From assembly GCF_006345805.1 (NCBI RefSeq), contig NC_043002.1:109430001-109494000 (forward strand): DNA of 64,000 bases. The letters are read 5' to 3'. Below the pieces are notes generated by a model. That model was not told where the DNA came from and searched no databases. It saw only the letters and a program-made list of their open reading frames with translations. This DNA comes from Octopus sinensis (lineage: Eukaryota). A program made the position numbers and the translations under genes. Below, in pieces: positions 31,001 through 34,000 of this stretch. Numbering within the stretch: position 1 is the stretch's first letter; the number at the start of each line of letters is the position of its first letter.

Positions 31001-34000
31001 GTGGAGGCGCAATGGCCCAGTGGTTAGGGCAGCGGACTCGCGGTCGTAGGATCGCGGTTTCGATTCCCAGACCGGGCGTTGTGAGTGTTTATTGAGCGAA
31101 AACACCTAAAAGTTCCACGAGGCTCCGGCAGGGGATGGTGGTGATCCCAGCTGTACTCTTTCACCACAACTTTCTCTCACTCTTACTTCCTGTTTCTGTT
31201 GTACCTGTATTTCAAAGGGCCGGCCTTGTCACTCTCTGTGTCACGCTGAATATCCCCGAGAACTACGTTAAGGGTACACGTGTCTGTGGAGTGCTCAGCC
31301 ACTTACACGTTAATTTGACGAGCAGGCTGTTCCGTTGACTCGGATCAACCGGAACCCTCGTCGTCGTAACCGACGGAGTGCTTCCATCCATAGTGATGAC
31401 AATGATGATGATGATGATGATGATGATGATGATGATGGTGATGATGGTGATGATCCTGGGATGAGAACAATGATGTTGATGATAGGGTGGTAGCGAAACT
31501 CATGACGATAACGATGTTAGTGGTGTCGATGGTGATGGGAGTTGTATGAAACCGGTGTTTACTTCTCGAATATAATGCTGCAATCCTTCAATACCGTATG
31601 TTCTCAGAACAAACCATAATTTCAATGACCGGAATCTTCGACTCAACGGAATTCCCCAATGCTAAAATAAACAAAAAGAGAAAACATAACTGAATATCTA
31701 TTTGTTACCTGGCCACCAGGTGGCACCACTGTCTCTACTTAACCGTGAAACGAAAAGAATGGAGACGAAATAGACTTTTCATTTCCTACAGTAAATCATC
31801 TCACCAGACTTTGCAACGAACTCTCTTTAAGTCCAGAGCTTTTAGGAACCCTTGCAGAGCTTTTAGGAACTCTCGTAGAGCTTTTAGGAACGCACGCAGA
31901 GCTTTTAAGAACCCTCGCAGAACTTTTAGGAACTCACGCAGAGCTTTTAAGAACCCTCGCAGAACTTTTAGGAACTCACGCAGAGCTTTTAGAAACTCTC
32001 GTAGAGCTTTTAGGAACTCACGCAGAGCTTTTAGGAACTCTCGTAGAGCTTTTAAGAACCCTCGCAGAACTTTTAGGAACTCACGCAGAGCTTTTAGAAA
32101 CTCTCGCAGAGCTTTTAGGAACTCTCGCAGAGCTTTTAGGAACTCTCGTAGAGCTTTCAGGAACTCACGCAGAGCTTTTAGGAACTCTCGTAGAGCTTTT
32201 AGGAACTCTCGCAGAGCTTTTAGGAACTCTCGTAGAGCTTTTAGGAACTCTCGCAGAGCTTTTAGGAACTCACGCAGAGCTTTTAGGAACTCACGCAGAG
32301 CTTTTAAAAACTCTCGCAGAGCTTTTAGGAACTCTCGCAGAGCTTTTAGGAATTCTCTCAGAACTTTTAGGAACTCTTTAACTCGATGTTATTTCTAAGA
32401 CACGTTGGTGGTGTTGTTTAGTTTTCAGTCGGCTCTGCTAAACCAGACTTTTGATTAAGGGCGTCTCAGCCAAGACATTCACTTCCTTTTCTTTTTCAGA
32501 CATATTTAGGGTGAAGGTGCATGATTTAGGTGTTATGTTGTCGCACTCACAACTGTTAGGTCGTGATTTCGATTCCTAGACCGGGCGTTGCATTGTGTTC
32601 TTGAGCAAAACACTTCATTTCATGTTGCTCCAGTTCACTCTGCTATCGATGAGTTTCAGCAAAAGCAGGCAAATTAACTCTGCAAAGGATCGGCATTGCG
32701 TTCGATGGATGGTAGTAGTGGTGAGCTGGCAGACGCGTTAGCACGTCGGGCGAAATGCTAAGCGGTATTTCGTCTGCCGTTTCGTTCTAAGTTCAAATTC
32801 CGCCGAGGTCGACTTTGCCTTTTATCCTTTCGGGGTCGATAAATTAAGTACTAGTTACGCACTGGGGTCGGTGTAATCAACTTAATACCTATGTCTGTCC
32901 TTGTTTGTCCCCTCTATGTTTAGCCCCTTGTGGGTAATAATGAAATAGGTGGTGGTGTAAGCTGACTCACTATATAGGTCATGGAAATCGGGTTACGATC
33001 CTGCTTCATGAATCGTAGGGTTTATAACAGACTCTAAGAAGAGCTTATTTAAGGTTACATTGTCCAATATTTACTTTTTCATCGTTTAGGCAGCGGGGGA
33101 AGAGCAGCGTTCGGGATTGATCTCGATCAAGACTGACTCGAAGTCAAACTTGAACAGCGACCAAATTTATTCGATGACGTCAAGATTTATGATTTTCAGA
33201 TAACGAAAAAATTTGAGAAAAAGAATATCAACTTACCCTGAAATCAATGGCTTTATCTATTCGACGTCGATAGTGGTGGAGTTTGATGGAGTTCGGTGGA
33301 GTTTGGTGTGGTGGATGGATTTTTGCGAAGTTTGGTGGATGTTAGGGGTTGTGATGTTGATATAATAAAATATATAGAAAAACAAGTAATTAGTCACGGA
33401 AAAGAAGCTTTAGAAAATGATATTATTGGGTGTAATACATAGAAGAAAAGCCGCGAGAAAAACAAAAACAAAAGACATTATCTATAAGCTTTTACAGAGA
33501 GTGAGTGAGAGAGAGAGAGAGAGGGGGAGAGAGAGAGAGTGGTAAAATGTATGGAGAAGGGGTAAGTTTACCGTGAGAAAAGCGAAAAATGAAAGAGATA
33601 GAGAGATCTTTTCTCTTTCTGTCACAGAAATTAAAATTTTAAAATTAAGTGAAAATTTTCAAATTTGGTATGTTGGTGTATTTTTTCACGCAGAATCCAA
33701 TTTTGTGATTCATGTATTCGAGGAAAATTTGAGAAAAATGTTTCAGAGGTTTAAAGTTTGATCATTTTTGAACAATCAGAAAACAGCATTTGTACATGGA
33801 TCTGTGATAAAATGAAAGTAAACATTAGAAGACAAAGTTTTAAACGGAAATTTACCTTTTGACCTACAGATTTAAAAAAAAAAAAGCATGAGTGGCTGTG
33901 TGGTAAGTAGCTTGCTTACGAACCACATGGTTCCGGGTTCAGTCCCACTGCGTGGCATCTTGGGCAAGTGTCTTCTGCTATAGCCCCGGGCCGACCAATG

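Follow-up and report, generated by a model that had tools for sequence, protein, structure and literature searches.

The window analyzed in this study is a 64,000-nucleotide (nt) stretch of Octopus sinensis DNA (NCBI RefSeq assembly GCF_006345805.1, contig NC_043002.1, positions 109,430,001 to 109,494,000), and the feature under consideration is a 20-nt microexon of an aromatic amino acid decarboxylase (AADC) gene, together with the splice signals that precede it. Most of the gene lies on the minus strand of the window, where its exons run from approximately 60150 down to 27521. The exons were searched for with tblastn, and a human DDC sequence served as the seed only. The resulting rough gene model showed a 98% match to O. 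bimaculoides XP_014774406.1 in a protein search, and the 90%-identity cluster of this protein includes O. sinensis XP_029638120.1 and O. vulgaris CAI9723793.1. XP_029638120.1 could be spliced onto the window codon by codon with an exact match, by which twelve exons were fixed; the first 104 or so codons of the gene lie past window coordinate 64000. The coordinates of the features are collected in Table 1.

Table 1. Positions of the exons around the microexon, of its splice signals, and of the corresponding microexons in other animals; positions refer to the window unless a contig (L004 to L009) is named.
Feature	Position	Strand	Description
Upstream exon	34577-34507	minus	71 nt; includes the catalytic-loop Tyr corresponding to human DDC Tyr332 (spliced match, 3rbf alignment)
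AG-free zone	33407-33259	minus	149 nt, between AG 33409-33408 and the acceptor AG
Best branch-site candidate, TGACTAAT (CUAAY type)	33396-33389	minus	candidate branch A 33390, 133 nt from the acceptor G
U-rich polypyrimidine tract, TACTTGTTTTTCTATATATTTTATTATATC	33388-33359	minus	30 nt, displaced by approximately 100 nt from the AG
CA-rich, G-poor, AG-free spacer	33358-33259	minus	separates the U-rich tract from the AG by approximately 100 nt
Second branch-site candidate, CCCTAAC (CUAAC core)	33347-33341	minus	candidate A 33342, 85 nt before the acceptor G
Acceptor AG	33258-33257	minus	tcgacgtcgaatAG
Microexon	33256-33237	minus	20 nt, phase 1, encodes (G)DKAIDFR; exact spliced match to XP_029638120.1
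Donor GTAAGT	33236-33231	minus	with the exon end gives the perfect consensus CAGG/GTAAGT (slash, exon boundary)
Downstream exon	31661-31563	minus	99 nt; spliced match
Exon after the 99-nt exon	30795-30694	minus	102 nt; spliced match
Last exon	28045-27521	minus	ends in the stop codon; spliced match
Mytilus 20-nt microexon	L004 32309-32328		Tdc-type gene
Capitella 20-nt microexon	L005 6340-6359		Tdc-type gene
S. purpuratus (sea urchin) 20-nt microexon	L006 11603-11622		Tdc-type gene
Tachypleus (horseshoe crab) 20-nt microexon	L007 20578-20597		Tdc-type gene
Amphioxus 20-nt microexon	L009 7984-8003		DDC-type gene, GLVTDYR

The Pfam family PF00282 (Pyridoxal_deC, group II pyridoxal phosphate (PLP)-dependent decarboxylase) is precomputed for the matching octopus proteins. 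The window-encoded NFNPNKW and DPIYLQH align to K303 and Y332 of human DDC, which indicates that both the PLP-lysine motif NPxKW and the catalytic-loop tyrosine are present. As judged from its domain and motifs, the gene is a group II PLP-dependent decarboxylase of the AADC family. The best non-molluscan matches are arthropod proteins named tyrosine decarboxylase by their sources, with 63-66% identity, and the octopus protein differs from the DDC-type at the position of the motif HWQIPLGRRF. A preliminary description of this stretch had called the gene Tdc; the family membership is supported, and the arthropod matches suggest the Tdc type. The label "Tdc-type" is considered a fair one, and the substrate specificity that it implies is a predicted one.

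The microexon is exon 11 of the 14 exons of this Tdc-type gene, and its sequence is ATAAAGCCATTGATTTCAGG. The 20-nt exon whose acceptor had been described as lacking a local pyrimidine tract is confirmed by the spliced match to XP_029638120.1. The acceptor region from -23 to -4 contains 15% T, and the values for the remaining ten acceptors are 35-80%. The described consequence of skipping also holds: when 34507 is joined to 31661, the reading frame is shifted and meets a TGA at 31590-31588, 24 codons into the downstream exon, 25 nt before the donor of this 99-nt exon and upstream of two junctions.

The encoded peptide aligns to approximately residues 340-347 of human DDC (3rbf) and ends at D345-Y346-R347, just past the mobile catalytic loop. 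It was considered whether the phenylalanine of the microexon (DFRHW) replaces the catalytic-loop tyrosine and thereby leads to aldehyde-synthase chemistry; this was rejected because Tyr332 sits in the upstream exon (DPIYLQH). The phenylalanine codon at 33244-33242 aligns to Tyr346 of human DDC, and this position is variable among the proteins fetched (Y in 188, F in 32, L in 9, and H in 3). The residue is phenylalanine in the octopus, in most of the other molluscs retrieved, and in Capitella, tyrosine in arthropods, in the sea urchin, and in a chiton, and leucine in some bivalves and gastropods.

A mutually exclusive twin microexon that codes for tyrosine was also sought by scanning both flanking introns for open frames of the form AG-N(14-32)-GT ending in D[YF]R, and this candidate was discarded, as only the known exon and an internal 14-nt variant of it were obtained. 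The internal AG of this variant (33251-33250, minus strand) lies six bases into the microexon (ATAAAG/CC) and is a possible alternative acceptor. Its use would give a 14-nt exon with an in-frame loss of two codons (Asp-Lys); the AAAG is also present in Mytilus and Tachypleus. The intron after the microexon contains, at 32352-31869 (minus strand), a 21-nt minisatellite (TTCCTAAAAGCTCTGCGAGAG-like) of at least 15 copies, in each of which the AG...GT spacing mimics a 20-nt open exon.

Age and annotation of the microexon

As shown in Table 1, a 20-nt phase-1 exon was found in five other genes, where exact spliced models place it between a 71-nt and a 99-nt exon, as in the octopus. Haliotis and Patella have the microexon fused to its upstream neighbour, which gives an exon of 71 + 20 = 91 nt. 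Because the same exon occurs in DDC-type and TDC-type genes across phyla, it predates both the DDC/TDC split and the bilaterian radiation; by this comparison, the microexon is inherited from the bilaterian ancestor. In every examined lineage that retains the intron, the reading frame relies on the microexon. A vertebrate contig (L008) was rejected as the DDC comparison: its gene, in which the microexon and the exon before it form one unit, is HDC-like and uninformative on DDC. The human DDC gene reportedly has exons as short as 20 bp (Sumi-Ichinose et al. 1992), a statement that an open-literature search did not retrieve.

The public gene models of O. sinensis, O. vulgaris, and O. bimaculoides all contain DKAIDFR. 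The microexon is therefore not a novelty, as it is already present in public octopus gene models. No skipped isoform was found among the three Octopus models retrieved, and the two RefSeq names carry no isoform label, which is weak evidence against skipping. Two further cephalopod gene models are without the microexon. In that of Argonauta hians, SGIE is joined to HWGIPL across a 159-nt in-frame gap (three exons), and that of Callistoctopus minor, whose protein is named tryptophan decarboxylase by the source, has a 117-nt in-frame gap. These two gaps are probably annotation repairs around a missed microexon, and not isoforms.

The octopus microexon thus shares with the conserved 20-nt microexon of the animal AADC family its length, its phase, its 71-nt and 99-nt neighbours, and the peptide xAIDF/YR, but differs from it in the arrangement of the 3' splice signals. 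The microexon acceptors of the five other species have an ordinary local pyrimidine tract (e.g., ttccattatctttttttcag), AG-free zones of 17-68 nt, and yUnAy matches 7-46 nt from the AG, whereas in the octopus the tract and the putative branch site are 100-135 nt away, behind a CA-rich repeat.

Splice signals and the AG-free zone

Of the 11 acceptors of the gene, that of the microexon alone has neither a U-rich tract nor a branch consensus in its vicinity. The yUnAy matches nearest to it are at -84, -108, and -132, and the most distal signals are those that had been described as lying approximately 133 nt upstream, TGACTAAT followed by the U-rich tract, both of which are found as described. Because the acceptor is unique in this respect, the most plausible reading is that the functional branch site and the U-rich tract are located approximately 100-135 nt upstream of the AG. 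The branch site is most likely TGACTAAT, with the A at 33390; the CUAAC with its A at 33342 is a less likely candidate and is not followed by a U-rich tract.

The region between the U-rich tract and the AG is biased in composition, with A 37%, C 43%, G 5%, and T 15% over 33356-33259. Its core (33265-33337) consists of a degenerate 10-nt repeat, AAACTCCAYC, which was identified by TRF and by a repeat-family search and has no other occurrence in the 64-kb window. An Rfam search gave no hit close to the threshold; in view of this result and of the uniqueness of the repeat in the window, neither a known family of RNAs nor a dispersed repetitive element was retained as an explanation. Both the minimum-energy fold and the centroid fold predict an unpaired spacer, and the predicted structure does not surpass that of shuffled sequences (z-score 0.31).

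An exon-looping helix, in which the acceptor palindrome TCGACGTCGA would pair over 8 bp with a GACGTC 90 nt downstream, was considered and rejected in view of this z-score of 0.31 and of the G-to-A changes that both of its arms show in O. bimaculoides, which do not compensate each other. A 15-nt direct repeat with 80% identity is located on either side of the microexon (33255-33269 and 33165-33179); its upstream copy falls inside the perfect palindrome. In O. bimaculoides, each copy has a G-to-A difference at the equivalent site, and the helix predicted between the copies is not conserved. Approximately 100 nt upstream of the branch candidate, there is a 44-nt CU-rich tract (33539-33496, minus strand), a typical PTB-type motif, which is 26 nt shorter in O. 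bimaculoides, so that its length is not conserved.

The cephalopod DNA compared was that of the genus Octopus only, and the protein search found no decapodiform orthologue. O. bimaculoides keeps the same layout, in which TGACTAAT, the U-rich tract, CCCTAAC, and the repeat follow one another within an AG-free zone of 147 nt. Both TGACTAAT and CCCTAAC are identical in the two species, and the U-rich tract is conserved apart from a 2-nt deletion and one substitution. The part of the spacer that is rich in YCAY motifs shows 95.1% identity at aligned positions, compared to 94.6% for the upstream intron and 90-94% for the downstream intron. As far as these alignments can tell, the YCAY tract is no more conserved than the surrounding intron, and the two species are too close for the comparison to be an informative test.

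The AG-free zone from 33407 to 33259, which had been noted in the preliminary description, is present and is 149 nt long. AG-free gaps of at least this length occur 27 times in the window; 12 of them are on the minus strand and 15 on the plus strand. In the gene itself, four other acceptors (49999, 43772, 41901, and 30795) have AG-free zones of 126-179 nt, all with local pyrimidine tracts. Zones of at least 100 nt are found at 5 of the 11 acceptors of the gene in the window and at 6 of 13 in O. bimaculoides, where one zone reaches 978 nt, and the orthologues of seven other animals have 0-2 such zones per gene, with medians of 30-53 nt. Long AG-free zones are thus gene-wide in the octopus and do not flag the microexon specifically, and they may be a general feature of octopus introns. 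Accordingly, only one part of the earlier claim that a distant branch point marks this exon as a regulated one is retained: a distant branch point is still the best interpretation because the acceptor is unique among the 11, but the long AG-free zone is no mark of this exon. The zone contains only 8 G, and mononucleotide shuffles reach zero AG with P = 0.04 for the zone and P = 0.09 for the spacer; the absence of AG is mostly due to the depletion of G.

Motifs in the spacer and candidate regulators

Nine YCAY motifs in 82 nt had been counted in the preliminary description, and this count is correct for 33354-33273, where six motifs are CCAC, two are CCAT, one is TCAC, and none is UCAU. The density is approximately six times the 1.75% found on the sense strand of the window; the 82-nt stretch was chosen so as to start and finish on a motif. 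Dinucleotide-preserving shuffles of the 82-nt tract, of the spacer, and of the whole zone gave mean YCAY numbers of 5.6 (P = 0.03), 6.2 (P = 0.08), and 7.2 (P = 0.23), respectively. As the motifs recur with the 10-nt repeat unit, they do not count as independent occurrences. The nine motifs are therefore largely a by-product of the repeat unit and the CA-rich composition, which account for most of the count.

The significance that had been assigned to the cluster was that of a splicing switch, in which a Nova/Pasilla-type KH protein bound to the YCAY cluster would block the 3' splice site, so that the microexon is skipped, the frame is shifted, the TGA triggers nonsense-mediated mRNA decay, and the synthesis of tyramine and octopamine is turned off. 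The position of the cluster fits the published Nova/Pasilla RNA map (PMC3165201), according to which an exon is silenced by binding upstream of it or close to the branch point, and the general statement on position effects of Nova/Pasilla had been given in the preliminary description as published. The octopus cluster resembles known Nova/Pasilla silencers in that it falls between the branch region and the 3' splice site, where binding is linked to silencing, and the frameshift and the stop codon that follow from skipping are real. However, the cluster is made mostly of CCAC from one repeat unit, lacks UCAU, and is not confidently above the composition-matched expectation. The conservation of the tract is that of the intron background, and the frequency of long AG-free zones in both octopus genes, the dependence of the frame on the exon in every lineage examined, and the three Octopus models without a skipped isoform all argue against such a switch. 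An even denser YCAY tract, in the intron after the 99-nt exon, resembles a CAT/CAC microsatellite. The step from these features to an on/off switch is thus unsupported for an exon that is ancient, obligatory for the frame, and contained in all three Octopus models, and each of the marks cited for it has a simpler origin; the Nova/Pasilla explanation is considered very unlikely.

The intron with the denser tract (31562-30796, minus strand), which separates the 99-nt and 102-nt exons, is of triplet-periodic, CAT/CAC-rich low complexity and is the densest YCAY region of the gene. It contains two of the other five sense-strand YCAY clusters of the window, at 31549-31393 and 31023-30849. Its counterpart in O. 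bimaculoides (L001 48868-49211, 344 nt) is one continuous 300-nt triplet-periodic CAT/CAC tract, which shows that YCAY clusters arise from simple repeats in this genome. In O. sinensis, the intron is split by a 389-nt insertion (31389-31001) that is absent from O. bimaculoides and is flanked by a 14-nt target-site duplication, ATTGTCATCACTAT (31403-31390 and 31000-30987). One end of the insertion looks by eye like the head of a tRNA-derived short interspersed nuclear element, and ARAGORN calls no tRNA in it.

The same 10-nt repeat that gives the YCAY motifs also yields four CATC and five CACC. CAUC and CACC are high-affinity motifs of YB-1 and activate weak 3' splice sites through the recruitment of U2AF65, also when situated inside the upstream tract, as in CD44 v5 (PMC3458536). 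Since one repeat gives both sets of motifs, a silencer cannot be separated from an enhancer by reading the motifs. The CA-rich repeat could accordingly be an intronic enhancer, at which a YB-1-type (CAUC/CACC) or hnRNP L-type (CA-rich) protein would recruit U2AF to a 3' splice site devoid of a local U-tract, perhaps with CCCUAAC at -85 as the branch site, the CUAAC core of which is conserved in O. bimaculoides. The CAUC/CACC match is as much driven by composition as the YCAY match. The evidence for the mechanism is mammalian, with the motifs much nearer to the exon there, and the lack of a U-rich tract after the candidate at -85 also speaks against it. An enhancer of this kind is regarded as unlikely.

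Another type of regulation is that of neural microexons included only where the enhancer-of-microexons (eMIC) domain of SRRM-type proteins is expressed. A long AG-free zone and a strong CUAAY branch sequence typify eMIC-dependent exons in flies and mammals (PMC8797185), and both are present here next to a microexon. In contrast to the eMIC/SRRM4-dependent exons, the octopus microexon lacks the defining UGC near the 3' splice site; the earlier statement that no such motif exists is borne out by the absence of any TGC in the 149-nt zone. Nor does a UCUC-rich tract separate its branch site from the AG; the CU repeat is situated before the branch candidate, and most of it is missing in O. bimaculoides. 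Furthermore, any functional enzyme needs the exon, and eMIC dependence is considered extremely improbable.

Recognition of the microexon

Taken together, the analysis favours, as likely but by no means certain, an ancient microexon that is included constitutively and probably has a distant branch point, in which a spacer repeat lies between the splice signals and the AG. The inclusion of the microexon is probably constitutive or nearly so. In the proposed mechanism, U2AF and U2 would assemble on the distal TGACUAAU and the U-rich tract, followed by selection of the first AG encountered downstream. Such a choice would be workable only since the spacer is AG-free, and it would be aided by the unstructured state of the spacer; the perfect 5' splice site would aid the recognition of the 20-nt exon. 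Very short exons are subject to steric interference, and a branch site 133 nt upstream would avoid a clash of U2 at the branch with U1 at a donor that lies only 20 nt past the AG. As the relatives manage with local signals, the avoidance of this clash by a distant branch point cannot be a requirement.

Exons with AG-free zones and distant branch points form an established class (PMC1431707). The octopus microexon shares with the AG exclusion zone exons of Gooding et al. 2006 (PMC1431707) a zone of more than 100 nt with a branch consensus and a pyrimidine tract at its 5' end, and none credible near the AG. The classic members are regulated exons whose zones contain PTB-type elements, whereas the octopus exon is essential for the frame, its zone is a CA-rich repeat, and its branch site is a putative one. 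Unlike in that class, long AG-free zones are also common in the octopus gene at acceptors that have local tracts. The octopus microexon is therefore regarded as a probable new member of the known class of distant-branch-point exons, on an exon that is already annotated and very old.

Several observations weigh against a purely constitutive exon. Human exons with AG-free zones of at least 100 nt are alternatively spliced more often (PMC1431707), a point that would favour a Nova/Pasilla switch. The absence of AG slightly exceeds what the depletion of G predicts (P = 0.04-0.09), which fits selection on the zone and does not indicate for what. YCAY clusters as dense as that of the spacer are rare: the 64 kb of sense strand contain only six, of which three border exons 9-11. 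In the comparison with O. bimaculoides, the YCAY tract is without indels, whereas the upstream intron has many. In a more far-reaching reading, a constitutive microexon 600 million years old would have become a regulated cassette that shifts the frame, through the insertion, in the octopus lineage, of a CA-rich repeat between the branch/pyrimidine tract and the AG; a Nova-, YB-1-, or hnRNP L-type protein on the repeat would then set the level of functional Tdc mRNA in a cell. Such a conversion is judged quite unlikely.

If the distant branch point is real, the octopus Tdc-type gene would provide a natural example of an essential and deeply conserved microexon that tolerates a 100-nt displacement of its 3' splice signals, given an AG-free spacer. 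Such an example would be of use for understanding how very short exons are recognized and for annotating cephalopod genomes. A bearing on amine-transmitter biology would arise only if regulated skipping were shown, to which nothing in the present analysis points.

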